DNA of 64,000 nt, from positions 1,433,035 through 1,497,034 of the forward strand of contig JAWQFM010000013.1 of NCBI GenBank assembly GCA_033442325.1. Reading direction: 5' to 3'. The notes under the pieces are model-generated. The model was given only the letters and a program-made list of their open reading frames with translations. It ran no database searches and was not told where the DNA came from. Numbering within the stretch: position 1 is the first letter of the stretch; each line of letters starts with the position of its first letter. Positions 1-15,385 of the stretch are shown here, piece after piece. A program made the position numbers and the translations under genes. This DNA is from Salpingoeca rosetta. Its lineage: Eukaryota; Protista; Choanoflagellata.

Positions 1-40
1 GTGTTGTTGTTGTGTTGTTGTTGTTGTTGTTGTTGTTGTC

Positions 41-134
<94 letters not shown>

Positions 135-2856
135 GGTTGCGCTCGATGCGCAGCTGCTCGATAATCTGCCTGCATGCCCACTTCCACCGCTGCACAGCCT
201 CGTGCTGCACGTAGATGTCATCGTAGCAGTACTTGAGCACCCACAGCACAAAGCCCGGGCTTGGCTGGCGACCTTTCATCACATTGCCATACGCTTGCAG
301 CAGCTTCTTCTCTGCCTGGAAGAGCTTCTGCCGTCGCCGCGCTCGCAGCATCACCTGCGATACCTCCTTCAATGGAACGTACACCACAAATGACGAATGA
401 TCATCCGCAATTTGCGCGCTTTCCTGGCTGCTCGTTCTGCTGCTCTCGTTGTTGTCATGTGCACAAATTCCGCTGTCGGCTCTCTGACTAGAGGGCGTAG
501 TTGCCATGCTTCTCTTGTCCGCCGCTTGGTTGGCGTCTCCGCCGTCTTTTTGCTCGCCTCGCGCACGACTGCCGCCTCGAGCACGAAGAAGTGGCGTGCG
601 GGACCCGCCACTTCCTCCGCTGTCGCCACAAACGCCGTGCTGAACACGATCTTCAAGATCATTGTCATCGTCTCGGGGTTGCACGGTGAAGGAAAACGTG
701 GTCACGAGCTTCCGCACTTCGTGCTCCTTCGAGTGCACGCGGTTGATGCGGAGAATGGCGCCGCGCGCCTTTGGCACGGCCTTGGCCAGGTCTTCCAGAC
801 GCAAGAACAGGTATGCGACGCCCAGGAACAGCAGCATAAAGCCGAAGATGGCCAGTTGAAATACGCCCACGGGGATGGTGTCAAAGCCAAAGTCCTCCAG
901 GTAGTAGGCGGGAGACCCAAGCATGCACGCAGCAGTCGGTAAGACGCCCGACTCTTTGTGGCAGTTGGAAGGCACGCCGTCCTGCGACACGCGCGCCAGC
1001 GAAGCAAACGTGTAGAAGAAGGGCGAGATGTAGTAGAACGCCTCCTGTGGCGGTGGCGCGTCCGCTGGGCCAACAAAGTAGCCGCTGAAGACGCCAGCCA
1101 TTCCAACAAATGCCGAGTACATGGTGAGCATGAAGTCGTTGCCCTGGTTGAAGTGGTACGCAACACCGGCCATGCCGCACATCCACGCCGCCGCGATTCC
1201 AAGCGTTTCCATCTGCAGCACCGCAATGGCGGTGAGGCGCGCGGCGCTCACGTGTCCTCCAAAGGCGCAGATGTAGATCACAACGATGGAGATGGTCGTC
1301 AGGGGGATGGCAACTGCGGCCAAGTAGCTGAAGGATGCAACGACCACCTGTGTCAATGTGCGGCAATGTGGTTGGTTGAGAAGTCACATACGCTTGTGTG
1401 CGAATGTGCGCTGGGGATGCATTGCACAAGGAGCACGTGCAAAACGTTTGTCAAGATAACGGCCTCACCATTCATACGAATGCACACTTGCACACCAACT
1501 ACTATTACCAGCAACAAGTACACATGCGCAAGCGCACACATGAACCAACCAACACACATGCAATCGCTTCACACATACACACACACACACACAGTCGCAC
1601 TCACACACGCAACGCAGTCTTTCACGCACACTCCCACAGGCACCCACGCACGCACGCTCATACACACACACGCGCGCGCGCCCTCAAGTGCAAGTACCTG
1701 AAGTGACGAGACAGTCTTGTGCTTCTTTTCCAGGCGGAATGCGTTGAATGTGTTAATGAGGCTGGCAGAGAACGTGAAGTTGACAAGGAGGGGAAACGTG
1801 TACATGATGCTGAAGTGGGTGCTTCCGAGTACAAACGCCGGGTTTGCATCAAAGTACAGCCAAGACATGTAGATCATGCTCAGCAGCAACTGCACCATCA
1901 GGTTTGAACGCAGCTGCCTCGCCATCTCCCGCTGGTATCTGCTGATGAGGGCACGGACACAAAACCACCAGCCCGTGGCGCCGTGCATGTTGTGGGTGAC
2001 AGCGATTGTGCTTCCACCGGTGCCCCCTTCGTGTGTGTTGCCCTGGCGCCAACCTTTGCGCAGCGTGAACTTCTTGCTCAGCCAGTTGTCTCCGCTGTGC
2101 TGTGAATCGGGCACACCCCGACCACCACCACGAGTGGTGCTGATGATGCCGTGGCTGCTGCCGTCGCCACCGCTGTTCGTGTGCTTGTTCTCACGGAACT
2201 GCTTCTTGGTTAGGTCGTTGCTGTTGCCGTAAACATCGCGCACACGCTTGCTGTGAGACTGAGGGGCTGGAACGGACAAGTGCGTGCCGCGTTTGCCTGT
2301 TGGTGATGTCGAAGACACGGGTGTCGAGGCCGACAGTGCGGGCGCGACCGTGTGCTTGCTGCTGATCAGTGCAGAGGAGGATGAGGATGAGGAAGCGGCT
2401 GTGCTTGGTGGCGCACTGTACTGCACCCGTGCCCGCGTCAGCCAAATCTCCCGCACGCGTGCCGCCGCCTTGCGAATGGCGCGCTCAACTCGCTTTCGCA
2501 CCCCCGTTGTTTCGAGGCTGGCCATGACTGCTTCCTCATTCTCCTCCCGCTGCATCTCGTCGAGAATGAGATCCGCCGGGTTCTGGTTCGCGCTCGAGGC
2601 TTCGGTACTGGATTTGCTGGCGTTGCTGGTGTCGCTGCGTGGCTGGACGCAGTCACGCCACTTGCCCGCCAGCTCAACCATCGCACTTGGTTCCCCAGTT
2701 CCAATCAGATGCCCGTTCTTCATGAGGATGACGCGGTGGAACATGTGGAACACCTCCGAGCGCGGCTGGTGAATGGAGATGATGACGGTGTTTCCGCGCT
2801 CAGCAAACGCCCGCAGCCACCGAATTAGGTCCAGTGTACCGGTTGAATCGAGGCCG

Positions 2857-2933
<77 letters not shown>

Positions 2934-4603
2934 TGTGGGTGTGTGGGTGTGTGTGGGTGTGTGTGGGTGTATTGAGAGATGAAAAGGGGAGAGTAGGTTA
3001 CATGCGCACAGCAATGAGTATGTGGCAAACTCAACGACACAAAACACACCCACAAGCCCACGACACATCAATCGCGCAACCACACATGCACAAAACCCGC
3101 CCACACCACCTTGTTGGCTCGTCCATGGCCAGGACAACCGGGTCTAGCAGGAGCTCCATTGCAACCGCCAATTTGCGTTTCTGCCGCGCAAAACGCACCA
3201 ACCATAGCATCGCGTCAATCCGATAACGTACGTCACACGTAGGCCGTGCGGGGCTCAACAAACATGTCCCACATGACATGATCACACACGAACGTGATCG
3301 ACCCAAGCAGCAACACACATCGGAATGCGCGCAAACACACACACACACACACACAAACCGAGCATGTTGTGATCCGATGCTCACACACACTCGCACTCGC
3401 ACACACACTCGCACTCGCACACACACTCGCACTCGCACACACACACACACACACACCTGTCCTCCGCTCAAACCGCCAGATGCTGCGTGCTTGTTGCCAA
3501 CGATCTTCACGCACAACAGGGCATGCGAAGGCACATTGTGCATAATGCAGCCCTTCAGTATACAATCACACTCACAGACCACACAGAGTACACACAGAGT
3601 GCACAAACGCACGCACGCACACACACACACACACGCCTCACCTTCTGCACACAGCACACAGCACACAACACGCACACATTCACGTGCACTCACCACCCTC
3701 ACACTCTCCCCAAAGCACGCACCGTGTCGAGGTGAGCACCGAGGCCGACGGTATGGAGGGTGGAGAGCGCCTTGGCCAGGCGTAACTTCAGTGGCATGGA
3801 GGCTGGCAGGCGCAGCAGGGCAGCGTACATCATGTTCTCCTTCACAGTCAGAGACGGGAAATATGCACCGCCATATTGCGGCACAAACCCCACGCGCACG
3901 CGAAGGCTTTTGTACTCATCGCTCGTCCGCAACAGCCGCCCATTCACGTACACCTTTAACAGCAAGAGGGACATGTACAGTTGGGCGGCGTGGTGGGAGG
4001 TGATGGAAGTGGTGCAAGTGGTGAGAAGTGGCGGTTCGAGTGAACATCATGGCGTGGGAACAACAGAGCAGTCAAGGCAACCGCATAGTTGTGCAGTCCT
4101 CAGTGGTACGTGCATGGTTGGTGCTCAGGTACCATACCATCAACACAGATACGACAAGAAACACACGCAAGAACCACACAAGAAACTCAGGCATGTGTGC
4201 ATATATGCAGACGCTCATATGTGCAGACACTCATGCAAACCAAGCGCTGTCACAAACCTGGCCGTTTCTGTTGTTGGACGGGATCAACCCTGCCATGGAT
4301 TTCAAGAGCGTGGTCTTTCCACAGCCAGATGGACCAAGAATCGCCGTCATTTCCCCTGCACAGATGAAAGCACACGAGCAAGCACGAGGCGACGTGAGTG
4401 CAACAGCAGCGATACAGACGCGTAGCTGTTCTTCGTCTTCAAAGCTACACTGCTGCTGCATGCGCACAATCAACCACAACACCTGATCACGCATGCACAT
4501 AAGCACACTCCAGTACAGCGGACCCACCCAGTGCGTGCATTTAAACACACACACGTACAGAGCCACACACACGCACACACACACACACTCACTCACTCAC
4601 TCC

Positions 4604-4634
<31 letters not shown>

Positions 4635-5637
4635 TCACTCCCCCCCCCCACACACACTCACACTCACACACTCACACACACGCATAGCCCCACTTAGACC
4701 CCCAACACACACGCACACACACACACACACACACAGATGCGCAAAGCGAAACGCACAAGGGTTGACAAAGGCGCTGATGTCATGAAGGAGCTGGCGCTTG
4801 TGCGTGTGCGTCCAGACGTTCAGTCCATACATTGCAATGCTGAGATGCTGTGCCTTCCAGGGATACAGCAGCACATCAGGGTCGGCATCGTACAGCTCAG
4901 CTGCCTCCAACGCTTCTAAATGCGGCGTGTGGATGGTATCCCGTGCCCCGCCTTGCTCGCTCGCGCTCTCGTGCACCAGCTGCTTAAGGAGGGTACGGTG
5001 CTGGCGAAACTTGTACCAAGCACACACGTTGCACATGAACAGCACGACAATGACAAGGATGAAGAAGGCCATGCAAAGGATCGGCAACAGGGAACCATCG
5101 GTCCATAGCCACTCGTCTTCGCTGGTGAGGATGCTGAGCACGGGCGGACACATGGGATCGCAGTCCACCCCTCGACACGCCGGGAAAGATGTGAGGTGCA
5201 AGTGCTGAGTGTCGGTGCTGCTGCTGTTGCTGTTGTTCGTGGTGGCGGGGCTGGTTGCCAGCCACCATCTGTTCACGAACGCGGGCATCGCCACATTGCC
5301 GTTGGCAAAGTATGTGTGCCACATGTCCAAGACGAAGGTGAACTGAAACATGCCATTCCTCACCACCCCGTCGTCTGCCTGCCTATCTCCAACCATGACG
5401 AGAAATCCGTGGTGGAAACAGGGCGACACAAACACGCTCAGAGCCGACACCTGCTGGATAGCCCGCTTGACCTGTGCCAAGGCAACACCGCCATACTCTT
5501 CCGCGAAACTCATCACCTCAGCCAATTCGCTCAGGCTTGGTTTGCTCTGAAGCAGCATTCTCTCGTACCGCTTCACCCCCTCAGCACCAGCATTGAATCC
5601 CTATTGTGTGTGCAAGTGTATGGGGAAAAGGGTAGGT

Positions 5638-5674
<37 letters not shown>

Positions 5675-7044
5675 TGAGTGTGTGTGTGCGAGTGTATGCG
5701 TCAGCAAGAGGGTGTACACGAATTCATGCGAGTGCGTGCATGAGTATGAGTTTGTGTGTTTGCGTGTTCGCATGCGTGTGTGCGCATACGACAACGCAAA
5801 CAGCATGACTGCAGTGCTGACCTGGCAACCACACAAACCACCCAGGGAGGCGCACCAACACCTGCACGCCCTCACCACAAATCCAGACAACCAAGAACGC
5901 GCACTCAAGCATGGCACACACGAACCAGAAACAGCGTGTAAGGGTCGTATTTAGACGTGAGGAGAAGAACCGGAAACGCTGGGTTGTGTGCGTGCAAAGC
6001 TCGCAGGCTGCACTGCACCTCGGCGCAGCAAGGAACAGGGTAGCCTTGGGACGACACTTGACCACACAAGTCGGCGAGCGCCGCAAAGTAGTCTCGCTGC
6101 CATGAGGAAGTGACGGATAAGCCCGTGGCGTTGCCGTTGGCTTGAGTGACGCTGGCAGCAAATGCGTCCAAGCTTGCGTGAACGCGACCGGGCGATGCAT
6201 AGAAGGACAGAAGGTCCTGATTTGTGAGCAGGGCCTCCTCCAAGATGCCATCCTGGTTCACAAACCAAGACGAGTCGACCAGCAGCTGCAGCTGAGCACC
6301 TCGCAGCCACACCATGGTGCTGTTGCTGTGTGAGCTGTTGGTGCCATGGGAGGGCTGCTGCGCCAGCGTGGACAACAGCGCATAAGCATGGGCCACAGCA
6401 GCAGTGCCACCAGCAGAGGTGCCGCTGAGCAGAACGCGCGTGGCTGGCGTGTTGGCGTGCGCGGAGTCGAGCCACTCAAGCGCGGCCATGATGTTAAGAG
6501 CGCCCCGAAACCGCAATGCAGCCAACTTCCTCGAGCTTTGAGTCGCTGTATCGCCATCACCGCCGCTTGATGGTTCAACGGGAATGTCGTCTGCCCGTGC
6601 ACCGAGAAACAGGTCTTGCGAGCAGTAGGGCAGGTACACTTTGTTGGCGTCGTGAAAGGCGGGGTTCAAGGCCGCGTCATGGGAGAAGAGGCCACCAAGA
6701 TCCCAAGCCTCGTACGCGGTCGGGGACTCCTTTGAGGACATGAGACGGGGGCTACTGCTGAAGCGCGTGCGTGCCTCGTCGATCGAGCGGGACAGGGCGC
6801 CTCCCTGCAGGAACAGGATCCAGATGCTTGAGTTGTCGCGTCGCTCCACGAAGAAGGTGTACGGGGTGCCATCCGCACAGCTGCTGGGATATGTCCGGGC
6901 GTCGCTGTCCTTCAGTTGCACCTTCTCCATTTGTACGCCGCCGGCGCACGCATGTTGCTGTTGCGTCAGCGCAAGGACCACGACGAGAGCGACAGCATGT
7001 CTCAGGAGCCCACGAGAAACGGTTCCTCGGCGTACTGTGTACAT
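1..7044 (-). CDS. Gene A: Notum/pectin-acetylesterase ectodomain fused to an ABCG half-transporter, catalytic triad intact; 3' end runs off the window
   Basis: Hand-spliced GT-AG exons: 7044-5926, 5600-4757, 4355-4258, 3953-3723, 3504-3457, 3180-3110, 2856-1698, 1347-<1. Signal peptide. PAE/Notum motifs CADGT, WILFLQGG, NP..ANKVYLPYCSQDLFLG, FRG, LLSGTSAGG, DSSWF, KYD, SPCFHH, CDPMCP. One TM helix. Walker [10 protein letters not shown]-loop FVPQ, signature LSGGQ, Walker B/D-loop LAMDEPTSGLD, H-loop IHQP. ABC2-type TMD (FSGYFV..YYISPFFY). Poly-Q at the window edge. Confidence 0.92.
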
Positions 7045-7637
<593 letters not shown>

Positions 7638-8268
7638 ATGCACACCAGGGCGAGAGGTCATGCGCAGATGGCTGCTTTCATCTTCACGGTGCTGTTGATC
7701 ATCATCAACAACAACGTGCAGTATGGGGCTCACGCGCAGCACGCGGGCAGCTCAGCATCAGTAACAACAACGGCAACATATCCGCTACCTGGCGCTGGTG
7801 CAAGCACAACAACGAGCATCAACAACACAAACGTCTCCCACACCTCCGGCCACATGCCGGCATCGGCAGAGGCAGGCCCAGTTGTTCCGGTACAAGTCCG
7901 CTCCATCATCAGTAACGCATCGGCCACAAACTGCAGGTGCTTCGACGGCAGTGCCTATCAGTATTGGTACGTGCCCGGTAACGCCAATGCAACGACCACT
8001 GCAAACTTGACGTGGGTACTGTACTTCCAAGGCGGACCCACCTTACAGTCCCTCCGTGATGTTGACCATATTGCGGATGAGTACTTGAGCGTGCCAGACT
8101 TGGAGGACGTGCTGCTTGACGGCGACTTTGGAGACGCATTGTCCAGCAACGAAGACATCAACCCACACCTCGCCAGCGCAACCAAAGCCGTCCTGCCGTA
8201 CTGTCATTTGGATGCATGGACAGGAGCAAGCGACGATGCACACAGCCCCAATGACACTGCCACAAGCA

Positions 8269-8333
<65 letters not shown>

Positions 8334-11300
8334 CCGCCACCTGCGGAACCTGTTTTCCAAGGGTTCACATGCACGCTTCGTGTGATTCAGGACATGCTTG
8401 CCCTCAACGAGCAGCCGCCGGAGCGGGTGGTCGTTGTGGCGCGTGGCTTCAATGGTGCAGGTGCGCTCGCACATGCGACTGCCTTGGCAAGTGCCCTGAA
8501 GCAGCCACCATGGAATGGTGCCACCCAACGGCTCTGGCTGGTGCTGGATGACGTTTGGTACACGGATCACGACAACATTTTGCAGGAGAGCCTGCTGTCT
8601 GTGGAAGACACCATCAGCTTCTACAACCCACCCAATCAAACCACAGCCCCTGTCAACATGCCTGCGTGGGAGGAAACGTACCGAAATGAGTTTGCGCGGC
8701 TGTGCCGCAACAACACGCTTCTCAGTGACAATCACGCCATTCTGCCCTGCTGCCTGGACCCGGCCTGTCTCTTGCAAGAACTTCACGCCGCCACAGACAA
8801 GGCGCGTGTGGCGCTGCTCTCCTCCAAATACAACCCCTACCCCATGTTCCTGGTATGTTCCTGGGCTGATTGCTTTAGTTGTTGCGGTGTGGTTGGGTTC
8901 CTGGTGGTGGGTGGGTGAGTGTGTGGGTGAGTGTGGTTTGTTCAAGTATGATGATGGCTTTCTAATGCCTTGTTTGGGCGCATGTTTGTACACCCGCATT
9001 ATGCGCCATGTGCACGCAATGCAACACACACAAACACAAACATGCACACACACAAATACACACAAACACAAACTGACACAATCATGCATACACGCAAGCA
9101 CACACACGCACACATACATGCCCGGACACAGAAATGCAAGTTCCTTGGGCTCTCCTGTCTGCTCACACCACATCTTTGACACTCCTCGACCCCCTCTCAA
9201 CTTGTGACATGCCGCTGTGTCCTTGCAGGGCTTGTTGAGGGGCGCAAGTGCCACTCAGGCGTTTGACTACCTGACAGAATCGCAGCTGTCCACCGTTCAG
9301 CAGCTGTCGGACCTCAGCAACTTCTTTGAGGAGCACGCCGGTCTTGTAGTGGAACAGCTCACCCAGGCCACAAACAACGCAAACGTGACCCTGCCACCAA
9401 TCATCACGCTTGCGTCCCCGTGCCTGACGTATGGCACCACGGCCCAGACGCAGCTTGATTTTCAGCCCGATGGCGTGCTGGACCCCTCCCTCCTCTCGAG
9501 CAGCGCCGTTGTCAGCTCGTGGAATGTTGTGTTTCCGGGCACGAACACGTCGACACGAGACACTGTCATGGACTGGCTTCTCCGACAGGACGCGCCCTCC
9601 GCCTTCCTCGCCCCTGCTTGCAAGGGTGTTGCGTGTGACCCAAGCTGCCCCAACATCATCGGTAGCGGCTTGACGGCAAGCCCAAGCCAGTGGCTGTCCG
9701 TGATTGACTTTGCCGTCATCGTGTTTGTCGGCACGCTGCTGGCTGCTGGCGTCATCACTGGTCAGATCGCCTGGCTGCGCACGCGCTTCCTCATGCGGAA
9801 GCTGACAAGACTCGAGCTCATGCCTCTGCTCACGGCCACCCACGCCCATAAGCGCAACTCCAAGCCGCATCGCATGTCGTCCCACGTGCGTCGCGTCTTC
9901 CGCAAGCGCCACCTCACCAAGCGATCAGAGGTCCTGCGCAACCAACTCTTTACGCGGCTGGAGCGGTCGCAGCGCATCGGCCTTGCAGCAGACGGCCTCA
10001 GCTACTGGACTCCCGGCGAAAACAGCAAGCAGATTCTTCACAACGTCTCCGTCTTTGCCAATCCCGGTGTGTGTGTGTATGTGTGTGACGGTGCGTGTGT
10101 GTGTGTGTGTGTGTGTGCGTCTTGTGCGTGTGGGTGTACGTGCGTACTTGTGTACTCGAGTGTGGTTGTACTCTTGAGTGCATACACTTTCTGGTGTACG
10201 TGCCTGCAAGAACCACCTTCATGTCTGTCGCTCAACATGTGTCTTTCTTCTTCATCCTCTGTTACCGGCGTGTTATCGCCTCTTGACGTCGGTTGTCTGC
10301 GCAACTGCCACCAGGCCAAATCACCGCCATCATGGGCCCGTCCGGTTGCGGAAAGACGACGCTCATGGACGTCTTAATTGGGCGGCGCAAAGTCGGCAAG
10401 ATACGCGGAAAGGTGGGGACATTTTGTGCGTGTGTGCTCGTGTGTATGTGTGTGTGTTGGTGTGTGTGTTTGTGCGTACATGCATGTGTGTGTGTGTGCA
10501 CCTGCATCGTTAGGAGCTCCCTGTCGTCGTTGCTTGTGTGTGTGCGTGTGTGGTTGTGTGTGCGTGTGTGCGTGTGTTTGCATCGTTGGGTCTGGGTGAA
10601 ACCAGCAAGTCACTTAGCGACGGCTCTCAAGTCACGTGCTTTCCTTGCCTTGCTATTGAACAGTGCATGATCAACGGCTGCGAACTGCACCACAAGTACG
10701 AGGAGCGGACGCTGAAGCATCGCGTGGCGTATGTCGAGCAGTTGTGTGGCGCCTATTTCAACGACATGACTGTCAGGGAAAACGCAATGTTCAACGCCAT
10801 GCTTCGTCTTCCATCGTCCATGCCAACAGAGGAGAAGCTCGTTCGTGCTCTCTCTGCCCTGAAGACAGTCAACCTCCTCCAGTTCGCAGACCAGGTACGC
10901 ACACATGGCCGTGTCGCAGTACCCATGCGTGCGGCGCTCTCTGTGCGTACTACTGTGACGAGTTGTGGGTGCTCGAGTGTGGCGTTGTGTTTGAGAATGT
11001 GTGTGAGGGTGGTGTGTGAGTGTGGCGTGAGTTCCTGCGGGACTGTTGGCGATGTACTACGAGCGCTTGTGCGGCACTGTGTGCACCCGTCACATGTATT
11101 CACAAATGCACTTGTTGTAGATCGTGGACACTGGTTCTGGGGGCCTCAGCGGTGGACAGGTGAGCTGATGGTGAAGTTGTCTGCGTCGACGTTGTTCCTG
11201 ACTGTCGCATATTCCCGTTGCCAACACTGACTATGTCGCTGTCGTGCCTGCGCTCCGCCTTCTTTGATCGCATGCATGCACACACTTGCATGAACACGCA

Positions 11301-14300
11301 TGTATGCGTTTGTCCGTTTGTGCTCCGTACCCGTGCACACGCACCAGCACGTTCGTGACCACACTCGTATGTTCATCACACCCAAATGCATTCTCATGCA
11401 TCCGCCCATACATGCACAGAAACGCCGCTTGGCCGTTGCAATGGAGCTCTTGCTTGACCCGGCTGTCCTGGCCATGGACGAGCCAACAAGGTACAGTGGG
11501 CGGGTCTTGTGCGTGCGTGCGTGTGTGTGTGTGTGGGTGAGTGTGTGTGTGTGTGTTGGTGTGTGTGTGTGTGCTGCTACTGCTGCTGGTTGGTGTGATT
11601 CGTGCCGTGGACTGCGTGGATAGTGTTTCGTTTACACTGTTGAAAACGAGTTGGTACAGATACAGGCGCACTTACATGTGTGGTTTGTACATGTCTACCA
11701 ACCCCCTCACCAAGTGTCAACAAACACACCACAACCACACAACCACATTCGTACATACATACGCGCACACACGCACGCGCACACACATACACGACTTGCA
11801 GCGGTCTTGATTCCAATGGCACGTGGGATTTTATGAACTGGCTGTGGGACTTTGCGCGGACAGGACGGACAATTGTTGTTTCCATCCACCAGCCACGCTC
11901 GGAGGTGTTCCACATGTTCCACCGCGTGATTCTCATGAAGAAAGGCCACGTTGCTGCCTTTGACAAGCCACAAAACCTCGTGAACCTTGCAAACGCGTGG
12001 CGTGCAAAGGCGGAACGCAAGCGCCTGCCCAAGATGGCAAGCTTGGCAGAGGGCCTCAATCCGGCGGACTTTGTGCTGGACCAAGTGAAGCGACCCGACC
12101 TCCACCACATTGTCATCAGCTCGTTCGACCGCACGCGCACACGTGCTCGTGTTGAACGCAGCATCCGGCGTGCCGTGAGCATGCTCAATGCAGCGCGGGA
12201 CACCCTTGCGTACCATCTGGGCGTGTTGCGCCACAGGAAGCACGAACTGAAGCGACTGCTGCACGGCAGCTCTCTGAGCATGAGCAACAGCAACGATCAG
12301 CAACAGCAGCAACACGGTCGGCAACCACATGACCAGCAGCAACATCAGGATTCACTCGATGGCGTCAAAGGGCCAAGGCACTCAGACGATCAGTCTGCAA
12401 GTGCTGCAGTCTGTGGTGATGGCGATGGCGGAAATGGCGATGATACTGAGGGGTTACACCGTTCACACCAGGACGAGGTCGTGGAACGCGTGGTGGACAG
12501 CAGTGATGTTGCAGACATTCTCGATCGAATCCGCGACAACCTGCATCGCTCCGAGAAAGACCTGTATCTGCCAAACGGGGAGGACATACTCACCACGGCG
12601 CATGCACCGCTGCGTGTGCTGTTGCTCACGGGCCGCTTCCTGAAACGCCTGCCGTCGTCTTTCTTCGTGGTGATGGCGCTGAAGGTCCTGGCGAACGCAC
12701 TTGGCTACTCGTGGCTGTACAGCAACGCGCAGGCTGCATACGTGGTGCTGTCATGTAACTTCTCTCTCATGTTTGGATTTCCCTTCCTCCTCGCCAACTC
12801 GTTTGGGTCTCGCATCATGACGTACCTCGAAGCATTTCGCCTCGAGGCCCAGATCGGCGTCGTCAACGCGTTTGAGGTGTGGTTGTTTGTGCGCTTGCGT
12901 GCGTGCGCGCACTTGCGTGTGTGTAAGTGTGCGTGTGTGTAAGCTGTGAGTGTGCGTGTGTGTTGTTTGCTTGTGGGCTGGCATGCGTTTGTACGTGGTG
13001 GTTTGCTTGCTTGCGCGTGAGTGTGTATGTATGCGTGTGAGCACGCGCATTTGCATGCAAGCTTGTTCCTTCGTTTACCTGTCTATACATGCGTTGGCTT
13101 GCTCGCTCTTGTGTGTGTGTGTGCGCAAACACCTTCCATGCTGAGCTTGAACCTTTGTGTTGAAGCTTCACTACTTGTCTTATTTGTCCTGCTCCCATGT
13201 GTGTGTGTACCGATGGATGCTCATCCCCGTTGTACACCGCGCCTGTACAACACCATTCTTGTAGGTGATTCTCGGCATGTTCATTGCAATGAGTGCCAGC
13301 GTGCTGCCCCTCTGTCTTGCGCTGTACACCGTTGTGTACGGCATTGTCTACTGGGACGCCTTTGAGCTTGAGCGTGTGCTGGGGACTTCCCTCATCCAGC
13401 TCCTCAACGTGCAGGTGCTCAACGCACTATTCCTTGCGCTGTGCGGTCTGTGCCACCGCAACAGCCTGAGCGCGCGCCATGCCCTTGCTTACTTCACCTC
13501 CATCGTGGGCGTGTTTGCTGCGCTGAGCGGGTTCCTTGTCTCCCCCGGCGACGCCACAGATCCGCAGCTGGTTCTCTACCACACGTCTCCGCTCTACTTT
13601 GTGTTCAGCGCAGCAGCCAAGATGGGGCTCAACGGCCTGAGCCTGGTGTCGTGCCAGGAAGAGGCTGGGGTGCTGGCCAGCTTCGTGTGCGAGGCGCAGT
13701 CGCCGTCGGGTGTGCTGTCGCTCCGAGGATACGACACGGTCAGTGTTGGCCTGATGCTGCTGGCGCTGCTTGGATGGAACATCTTGCTGCTGATTGTGGC
13801 AGCCATGGCCATCAGTGAATCCCCACTGCCTGCTCTGCGACTGTCACGCGATCACCCGTCTGTGTGGCGGAAAATGAGCAAACAGCGCATCGAGCAGCAC
13901 GGCCAGCGCTACCTCATCAGCTTCATTGCGTCGTCCGGCAATGGCAATGCGAATAACCCACCGGCAACCACATCAACATCGTCGTTATCGTCAACAACAA
14001 CAACAGCGCCATCGCCGCCAAGAGCTACAAGCAGTTTCAAGTCTTCCGCGCCCACGTCTGCAGAGCATCGCCCATCGCTCCCCGTGGTAGACGAGGACGA
14101 TGCAGGCCACGTGTTTGTGCTGCCCGCGGTGAAGCGGCTGACGCGCCCAAGGGGCTTCTTCTCACACTCCACCCAGTCCTCCATTCGCTTCAAGCATCAC
14201 CCGCAGCGTCACCACCATCACCACCATCACCACCACCAGCATGCAAGCCGCCGGTCCACGATGATGAGTGACGACCTGGTGTCCGTGCACCACAGACCCT

Positions 14301-15385
14301 CGATGCTGCTGCCTGTTGCCGAGGTGGCGGAGGAGGGTGAGGAGGAGGCGAAGGAGGAGGAGCAGCCGGGTGCTATGCAGCACGCCAGACAGGGCGAGCG
14401 CGAAGGGCTGATATTGGATGGCGGTGTCATGCCTGATGATACCGCGGCCCGCACATACCCAAAGTGGAGCAGCGTCGGCAGCAACGGCAGCAGCGTTGGC
14501 GGCTTTGACACTGGAGGCACAGCCACGCCCAGCCTGGCGCACGCGGACGGCACAACCCAGCTGGCAGCCACGCAATCCCACCGCAACCCGCGCCCGTCCA
14601 TTGCCGCGCCAGCAGCGGCAGCCGGGATGATGCAGGCGCGTGCAATGGGCAGCCTGTCGTCGATCGGAGCCGAGCTGCGCGGCCTGGCTACTCACGACGC
14701 CGGGTGGGAGGATGTGCGACGGGCAAGTGTGCTGGATCTGATGGACCTGCCAAGCTCGGACGATGAAGACGACGATGACGATGAGCAAGACCTGCAGACG
14801 GCGCAGAACGAGATGCTGATGGCCATCTCGGGCGTGCTCGGGCAGCACTCCACGCGCGCCGTGCACTCGTGGCTCACGCAGCGAGAGAAGAACACGTCGG
14901 CGTTGCTGGAGATGCTGGCAAACCCGCGGAACCGCTGGCAGCGGGCCGTGTACCAGCTGCTCAAGAAGGGCGCGCTGCAAGCGGGCGCACCACAACAACA
15001 AGAAGCAGAAGAAGAGGCGCAGCTACACCAGGCGCACCGTCAACAACAGCAAGAGCAGTGGCAACACGAGACACCAGCAGCGAGTGTGCCTGGTGTGCCG
15101 CCTCAGGACAGCGGCGTCTGCGGTGTGGATGATGTGCCCGCGCACCCCCGTGCATCAAAGAGAGTCGTGGACTTCTCGCTGCCCGCAACACACAGCATTG
15201 GCTCGTATGATGAGAATGATCGTGGAGACGGGCACAAGGCAGCCCACGCTGATAAAAACGACAACAGTGACAACAAGGAAGACGAAGGTGGCAGCGGTGT
15301 TCGACAAACGAGTGTGTCGGCCGTCCGCGGTCCAATGCGGAGGAGGAGGGCGCGGATGTATGGCCGTCGTGCCACGCAAGTGTGA
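7638..15385 (+). CDS. Gene B: catalytically dead Notum/PAE-like ectodomain fused to an ABCG half-transporter (paralog of gene A)
   Basis: Exons 7638 (or 7668)-8852, 9229-10066, 10315-10412, 10664-10894, 11121-11159, 11420-11490, 11802-12876, 13265-15385. Motifs [35 protein letters not shown]; TM; [32 protein letters not shown]; TMD ([14 protein letters not shown]); long low-complexity tail. Confidence 0.92.

Follow-up and report, generated by a model that had tools for sequence, protein, structure and literature searches.

Gene B (PTSG_05724), located in a 64,000-nucleotide stretch of DNA from the choanoflagellate Salpingoeca rosetta (contig JAWQFM010000013.1, positions 1,433,035 to 1,497,034 of the forward strand; the whole stretch is called the window, and coordinates are counted from its first letter), encodes a half-transporter of the ABCG type whose extracellular domain has lost the catalytic residues that its neighbor, gene A, retains. 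In assembly GCA_000188695.1 the window corresponds to scaffold GL832967.1. The two genes are arranged head to head, the A start codon at 7044 on the minus strand being separated by about 590 bp from that of B at 7638 on the plus strand. Gene A (PTSG_05723; protein P0006, 1587 amino acids) runs on the minus strand from 7044 past the first base of the window, and P0006 is 100% identical to its exon 1; gene B (public model P0178) is read from the plus strand as far as 15385. Both products have the same layout, i.e., a signal peptide, an ectodomain like those of pectin acetylesterases (PAE) and Notum (PF03283), a single transmembrane helix (TM0), an ABC ATPase or nucleotide-binding domain (NBD), and an ABCG-type transmembrane domain (TMD) with a long tail. 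The data presented below support the assignment of B as an ABCG half-transporter with canonical ATPase motifs that is transcribed and correctly spliced, and the residues at the aligned positions support that its ectodomain is a putative pseudo-esterase, a PAE/Notum-fold domain that is predicted to be catalytically dead. On balance, we favor a reading in which B is a working half-transporter with a pseudo-esterase ectodomain, most likely acting in a heterodimer with A, the dead domain being non-catalytic.

Catalytic site and scaffold of the B ectodomain

The catalytic triad of human Notum is S232/D340/H389 (PMC8172013). A family profile made from 80 relatives, with B left out, was aligned to the human Notum chain 4uyz_A, and its Ser, Asp and His columns fell on residues 198, 306 and 355 of that chain, which correspond with an offset of 34 to S232, D340 and H389. 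On these columns A carries S210, D367 and H437 (codons 6417-6415, 5946-5944 and 5411-5409). The residues found there in B, numbered from the ATG at 7638 and placed by both the profile and the alignment, are the following:

8445-8447, plus strand: Gly270, codon GGC, at the nucleophile position (Notum S232, A Ser210)
8832-8834, plus strand: Asn399, codon AAC, at the acid position (Notum D340, A Asp367)
9430-9432, plus strand: Tyr473, codon TAT, at the base position (Notum H389, A His437)

The nucleophile elbow SGTSAGG of A is aligned to VARGFNG in B, so that B reads A-R-G-F-N where the family has G-x-S-A-G; the acid motif SKYDPY is aligned to SKYNPY, and the base motif SPCFHHG to SPCLTYG. Ser-Asp-His is present in 106 of about 155 aligned relatives and a few carry one change, but all three residues are lost in B only. 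The three codons of B are covered by RNA reads and contigs from four runs with zero differing letters, and hence the substitutions are not an assembly error. A preliminary description of this DNA, made from the letters alone, had stated that all three catalytic residues are missing from B, had placed the nucleophile of A at codon 6417-6415, and had proposed a comparison with the human Notum triad; the codon was confirmed, and the comparison put the three substitutions exactly on the triad columns. With elbow, acid and base all substituted, B would be incapable of serine-hydrolase chemistry at its canonical site. The triad and the G-x-S-x-G elbow that characterize PAE/Notum enzymes are found in A (S210, D367 and H437) and are absent from B, which combines the loss of catalytic residues with the retention of fold, frame and expression that is typical of pseudoenzymes.

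The loss in B is focused on the active site. Twenty-eight columns of the family are conserved at 80% or more, and A retains 26 of them and B 16. Both columns absent from A make up one Cys pair, which is absent from B too, and 6 of the 10 losses that belong to B alone are the G, S, A and G of the elbow, the Asp and the His. As for the scaffold, the two ectodomains share 30.4% identity over 454 columns, 10 of the 11 cysteines of A are conserved in B, and the QGG, NP and PYC motifs can be read in the alignment of B, in agreement with the structural motifs listed in the preliminary description. With PF03283 (cut-off 26.6 bits) exon 1 of A scored 90.8 bits and exon 1 of B 35.3 bits, both above the cut-off, and the full ectodomain of B matched the profile of 80 relatives with 89.6 bits over positions 20-390 of 397. 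The number of cysteines kept at this level of identity, the full-length profile match and the focused loss argue for structural constraint on the domain.

The AlphaFold2 (AF2) model of A residues 36-545 (predicted local distance difference test, pLDDT, 76.5; predicted template-modelling score, pTM, 0.85) superimposes on Notum with a template-modelling (TM) score of 0.79 by target (E 7e-19). For B, the two-thirds of the ectodomain encoded by exon 1 were modelled (pLDDT 71.5, pTM 0.70); Notum was the top match in the PDB (E 1.7e-9, TM 0.45-0.48), and the language-model features of this part matched PAE clusters at 0.94. The earlier claim that B keeps the fold is therefore backed by structure prediction for the exon-1-encoded two-thirds, which are predicted to be kept as a folded Notum-like domain, and by sequence alignment only for the last third, which probably belongs to the same fold.

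Gene model, expression and transporter half

The features of the locus, with the evidence on which each of them was assigned, are as follows:

7045-7637, no strand assigned: intergenic region shared by the divergent A and B start codons (coordinates from sequence; simple repeat at 7385-7486)
5926-7044, minus strand: gene A exon 1, signal peptide and live PAE/Notum ectodomain with Ser210 (6417-6415) and Asp367 (5946-5944) (PF03283, 90.8 bits; phmmer to Notum structures, 3e-14, nucleophile aligned)
4757-5600, minus strand: gene A exon 2, His437 (5411-5409), C-terminal Cys cluster, TM0 and juxtamembrane stretch (sequence, annotated protein, AF2 model)
1-4420, minus strand: gene A exons 3 onward, NBD, linker, TMD and tail (runs off the window start)
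7638-8852, plus strand: gene B exon 1, signal peptide, low-complexity N-terminal stretch and ectodomain as far as the acid motif SKYNPY (open frame; PF03283, 35.3 bits; unbroken RNA depth, no internal joint)
about 8259-8346, plus strand: gene B poly-Ser insert within exon 1 (sequence)
8853-9228, plus strand: gene B intron 1, GT..AG, phase 0 (joint 8851/9228 in raw RNA reads and contigs of three runs)
9229-10066, plus strand: gene B exon 2, rest of the ectodomain (base motif SPCLTYG, C-terminal Cys cluster), TM0 and cytosolic juxtamembrane stretch to the NBD start (sequence, RNA)
about 9691-9777, plus strand: gene B TM0 helix (sequence)
10315-10412, plus strand: gene B exon 3, Walker A (RNA contigs)
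10664-10894, plus strand: gene B exon 4, Q-loop (start by RNA contigs; the rest from sequence, agrees with P0178)
11121-11159, plus strand: gene B exon 5, GLSGGQ (sequence, agrees with P0178)
11420-11490, plus strand: gene B exon 6, Walker B (sequence, agrees with P0178)
11802-12876, plus strand: gene B exon 7, D-loop, H-loop, linker and TMD start (sequence, agrees with P0178)
13265-15385, plus strand: gene B exon 8, TMD and long cytosolic tail (sequence, agrees with P0178)

The region between the two start codons presumably acts as a bidirectional promoter. In four runs, stranded raw RNA reads and transcript contigs showed that the B intron 8853-9228 (GT-AG), which occupies the same codon position in A, is spliced out and that exons 1-4 are joined; in these data exon 2 ends at 10066, exon 3 spans 10315-10412 and the following exon begins at 10664. 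The reading frame of B is unbroken over eight exons and about 1924 codons. Its first two in-frame ATGs are at 7638 and 7668, and either of them supplies a signal peptide. The public PTSG_05724 model (P0178, 1756 amino acids) begins instead at the ATG at 7854, thereby omitting both, and it also splices out approximately 8103-8390, so that 96 internal residues are missing. RNA reads and contigs span this stretch without a joint, and it carries the PYC motif and the helix that precedes the elbow; its removal explains why no PAE domain is listed for B in the databases. The true product of B is about 1924 amino acids long.

The poly-Ser insert comprises about 25 in-frame serines between the PYC strand and the pre-elbow helix of B (window 8259-8346). 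The corresponding position of A has an unrelated Gly/Asp/Thr-rich loop, and the region is of low confidence in the AF2 model of B.

As read from their sequences, both proteins carry canonical forms of Walker A, the Q-loop, GLSGGQ, Walker B (LAMDEPT), the D-loop (SGLDS) and the H-loop (IHQP). The preliminary description had called the ATPase of B intact and had located the asymmetry of the pair in the ectodomain rather than in the ATP sites, and this is what is observed, since both NBDs carry consensus motifs and the triad is lost in B only; that the B ATPase is intact is indicated by its motifs. PF00005 matched A with 91.5 bits, and B is on record with the same family. The ABC-2 membrane domain PF01061 was below threshold in A and is absent from the recorded Pfam families of B; the hydrophobic regions of the two proteins can be aligned to the TMDs of P0029, P0288 and P0150, which are PF01061-positive, and group with them in one clade. 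The TMDs of A and B are 27% identical to each other.

Most introns of A and B, as well as the shared intergenic region, are filled with simple repeats of the (GT)n/(CA)n type (e.g., 7385-7486, 10070-10130 and 2800-2900), which translate in six frames into long CVCV or HTHT runs and give rise to spurious open reading frames (ORFs). The tails of A (1-400) and B (13900-15385) are long, of low complexity and expected to be cytosolic; that of A has poly-Gln, poly-Thr and poly-Asn runs, and that of B poly-His and acidic runs. No family match was found for either tail.

Origin of the pair and rates of change

A and B are sisters in the trees of the NBD (100/98), the ectodomain (93/74 and 93/82) and the TMD (91/93). 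The same order of PAE, ABC_tran and ABC2_membrane domains is found in Sycon ciliatum XP_065192370, in Oscarella lobularis XP_065833170 and XP_065837240, and in the JGI metagenome protein P0150, with fragments elsewhere; the fusions are listed here as P0029/P0155 (Sycon; locus L002), P0288, P0305 and P0150 (locus L003). The gene of P0150 is intronless and lies on a metagenome contig of 57% GC from an uncultured eukaryote. The Sycon, Oscarella and P0150 fusions all keep Ser-Asp-His. In the NBD tree, whose outgroups were full-size ABCGs only, the PAE-ABCG fusions group in a single clade (100/99), as they do in the ectodomain tree (95/93). Because the sponge and metagenome fusions fall in one clade with A and B, the fusion seems to predate the divergence of choanoflagellates and animals. 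In three further PAE/Notum genes of S. rosetta (G000:C22:235569-236945, G000:C36:138046-138956 and G000:C1:2825305-2827476) the GxSAGG elbow is intact, and no ABC motif lies closer to them than about 10 kb; A and B are consequently the sole PAE-ABCG fusions in this genome.

Two candidate relationships were discarded. A giant-virus origin of P0150 was abandoned in view of the GC content of its contig, the lack of an IMG/VR relative, and the nature of the neighboring ORFs, which are small, have no Pfam match and look like spurious calls on eukaryotic DNA. Adp1-like half-transporters were dropped as closest relatives of the NBDs, given that the fungal matches were full-size ABCGs with two NBDs that had been selected by a length filter. 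A well-supported sub-clade of sponge-like PAE-ABC fusions, P0019 (locus L020:338-2755) and P0130, has G-x-D-A-G at the elbow, with Asp in place of the nucleophile Ser and the Asp and His of the triad kept. This elbow is conserved between the two diverged sequences; instead of marking a dead copy, it may reflect the use of Asp as nucleophile.

The terminal branches since the duplication measured 0.72 (A) and 0.66 (B) for the NBD and 0.95 (A) and 1.15 (B) for the TMD. For the ectodomain they were 0.71-0.76 in A and 2.13-2.41 in B, i.e., about 3 times longer in B. Counts of unique changes in the ectodomain against four outgroups gave 49-58 for B and 32-37 for A (about 1.6-fold; p 0.02-0.1). No consistent asymmetry over the four outgroups was observed for the NBD and TMD, where a single NBD comparison (P0288) leaned to A with p 0.039. 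Since the NBD and TMD branches are symmetric and those of the ectodomain are not, the acceleration is specific to the dead domain, and it would be small compared with that expected from neutral drift if one considers that a conserved NBD changed by about 0.7 per site over the same time. The B ectodomain appears to be under relaxed constraint without decaying. The part of the preliminary description that regarded this ectodomain as selected is supported in part by the Cys framework, the full-length profile match and the focused erasure of the active site, and is weakened by the long branch and the excess of unique changes.

Relatives of B itself were looked for in three ways. A library search with the A ectodomain returned A alone below 1e-30, word-indexed searches returned only Notum-like proteins or A itself, and metagenome scans with B and with an alignment of A and B returned no relative, so that neither orthologs of B nor other live/dead pairs appeared in these searches.

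Proposed pairing of A and B and comparison with known systems

The favored reading can be formulated as a series of steps. An older esterase-ABCG fusion would have undergone an inverted tandem duplication in the lineage leading to S. rosetta, giving rise to A and B. After the duplication, the B ectodomain would have lost catalysis and accelerated while retaining its disulfide scaffold, and the NBD and TMD of B would have continued at the pace of A. In an A/B heterodimer both ATP sites would then be competent, and a live ectodomain would be combined with a dead one, the latter acting as a scaffold or holding the substrate or the product. ABCG half-transporters act as dimers, and this fact, together with A and B being the only such fusions in the genome and sharing a divergent promoter region of about 590 bp, favors the A/B heterodimer, although we consider that this pairing, taken by itself, has a roughly equal chance of being right or wrong. 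The B ectodomain may have a binding, sensing or hand-off role, as the preliminary description had suggested. A complex prediction of the A ectodomain with the B ectodomain, the latter supplied as two exon-encoded chains, scored 0.00 and gave no answer, and it speaks neither for nor against binding.

Several observations weigh against this reading. Both NBDs are canonical, so that A/A and B/B homodimers would be equally workable, and a TMD identity of 27% is as compatible with two separate transporters as with a specialized heterodimer. A faster ectodomain, the poly-Ser insert and the low-complexity N-terminus are also expected of a decaying vestige. The structural model of B is limited to the part of the ectodomain encoded by exon 1. 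The co-expression of A rests only on the share of the words of the stretch that occur in RNA-derived runs, 0.70-0.78 compared with about 0.39 for the B exons alone. In addition, no second copy or head-to-head partner lies beside Sycon P0155 or metagenome P0150, the two loci with readable flanks, and their triads are intact; hence, a live/dead pair is so far known from S. rosetta only, and the orthologous pairs with one live and one dead copy that the preliminary description had advised looking for were not found at these loci or in the searches above. Finally, the collections searched contain no ortholog of B from which the ratio of nonsynonymous to synonymous substitution rates (dN/dS) of its ectodomain could be computed.

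The main rival explanation is that B functions independently of A, either in a B/B homodimer or together with some other partner, and that its ectodomain is a vestige that is folded for membrane insertion, quality control or trafficking and has no ligand-related role. This account, which we regard as a serious though clearly less probable one, draws on the same threefold longer ectodomain branch next to symmetric NBD and TMD branches, the poly-Ser insert and long low-complexity N-terminal stretch, the divergence of the TMDs to 27% identity, and the homodimers that two canonical NBDs would permit. It accounts less well for the preservation of 10 of 11 cysteines and most structural columns while the losses cluster at the catalytic site, for the PAE-specific QGG, NP and PYC..D..G motifs, which a domain needed only for its fold would not have to retain, and for the common divergent promoter region of the sole two fusions in the genome.

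A stronger version of the heterodimer reading is rather improbable. In it, hydrolysis and transport would be coupled in an obligate heterodimer of A and B, where A would cut an extracellular acyl or acetyl ester (of a lipid, glycan or protein) and the pocket of B would hold the substrate or product over the translocation path. Since the same fusion occurs in sponges, such a system could be a pre-metazoan relative of the Notum system, linking deacylation to lipid transport before Wnt.

We consider it very improbable that the B ectodomain is still a hydrolase that uses residues outside the canonical triad: the Asp elbow of P0019 and P0130, with Asp and His kept, indicates that the family tolerates an elbow other than Ser, but B has Gly at the nucleophile position and no Ser, Cys, Thr or Asp in its A-R-G-F-N-G elbow, the acid and base are lost as well, and Phe and Asn occupy the places of the small residues that give the elbow its shape. 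Least probable of all is that B is a decaying pseudogene or that its substitutions are artefacts of assembly or annotation, as might be suspected from the low-complexity inserts and from a public model that is wrong at the 5′ end (start codon and internal "intron"), given the intact frame of about 1924 codons in eight exons, the correct splicing and strand-specific transcription seen in independent runs, in which none of the three codons shows a differing letter, the canonical ABC motifs, and NBD and TMD rates equal to those of A.

The known systems closest to the ectodomains are Notum (a palmitoleoyl-protein carboxylesterase) and the plant pectin acetylesterases, which are CE13 alpha/beta-hydrolases of PF03283. 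Both A and B match this family and have Notum structures as best PDB matches; A keeps Ser-Asp-His as well as the GG oxyanion loop, both where Notum has them, and most family cysteines, NP and PYC..D..G are kept in both. The known members, however, are secreted and soluble, whereas the A/B domain is tethered by a transmembrane helix to an ABCG transporter, B lacks the triad and the G-x-S-x-G elbow, and A and B both lack one family Cys pair. Wnt is not known from S. rosetta.

For the transporter half, the comparison is with ABCG5/ABCG8, which are co-expressed head-to-head ABCG partners with a shared divergent promoter region (PMC7756502). A and B are likewise half-transporter paralogs encoded head to head, with about 590 bp between starts, and are sisters in three domain trees. 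In the obligate ABCG5/ABCG8 heterodimer the ATP sites are asymmetric, the signature being degenerate in G5 and Walker A in G8, whereas in A/B the asymmetry resides in the added ectodomain and both NBDs are canonical; moreover, the ABCG5/ABCG8 heterodimer is established and that of A/B is inferred. Non-catalytic alpha/beta-hydrolase ectodomains serve in binding elsewhere, e.g., in neuroligins (PMC5943944), but neuroligins, gliotactin, neurotactin and the ChEL domain of thyroglobulin belong to the cholinesterase/carboxylesterase branch, not to PAE/Notum, and none of them is fused to a transporter. The sponge and metagenome PAE-ABCG fusions share the architecture and the clade of A and B but keep Ser-Asp-His, and they are uncharacterized database entries.

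A literature search returned nothing on these genes or on Notum/PAE-ABC fusions. Live/dead paralog pairs and asymmetric ABCG heterodimers are known ideas, but an ABCG pair that is asymmetric in a fused extracellular esterase/pseudo-esterase is undescribed in the literature searched. The public PTSG_05724 model masks the PAE domain of B, which renders the A/B pair invisible in domain databases. S. rosetta is a model organism that can be genetically manipulated, and since the pair is located in this organism, the role of a dead hydrolase domain on a transporter is directly testable. The Notum-like esterase-ABCG clade, which spans a choanoflagellate, two sponge classes and an uncultured eukaryote, may matter more than the pair itself, as it offers a lead on the roles of the Notum family before Wnt.

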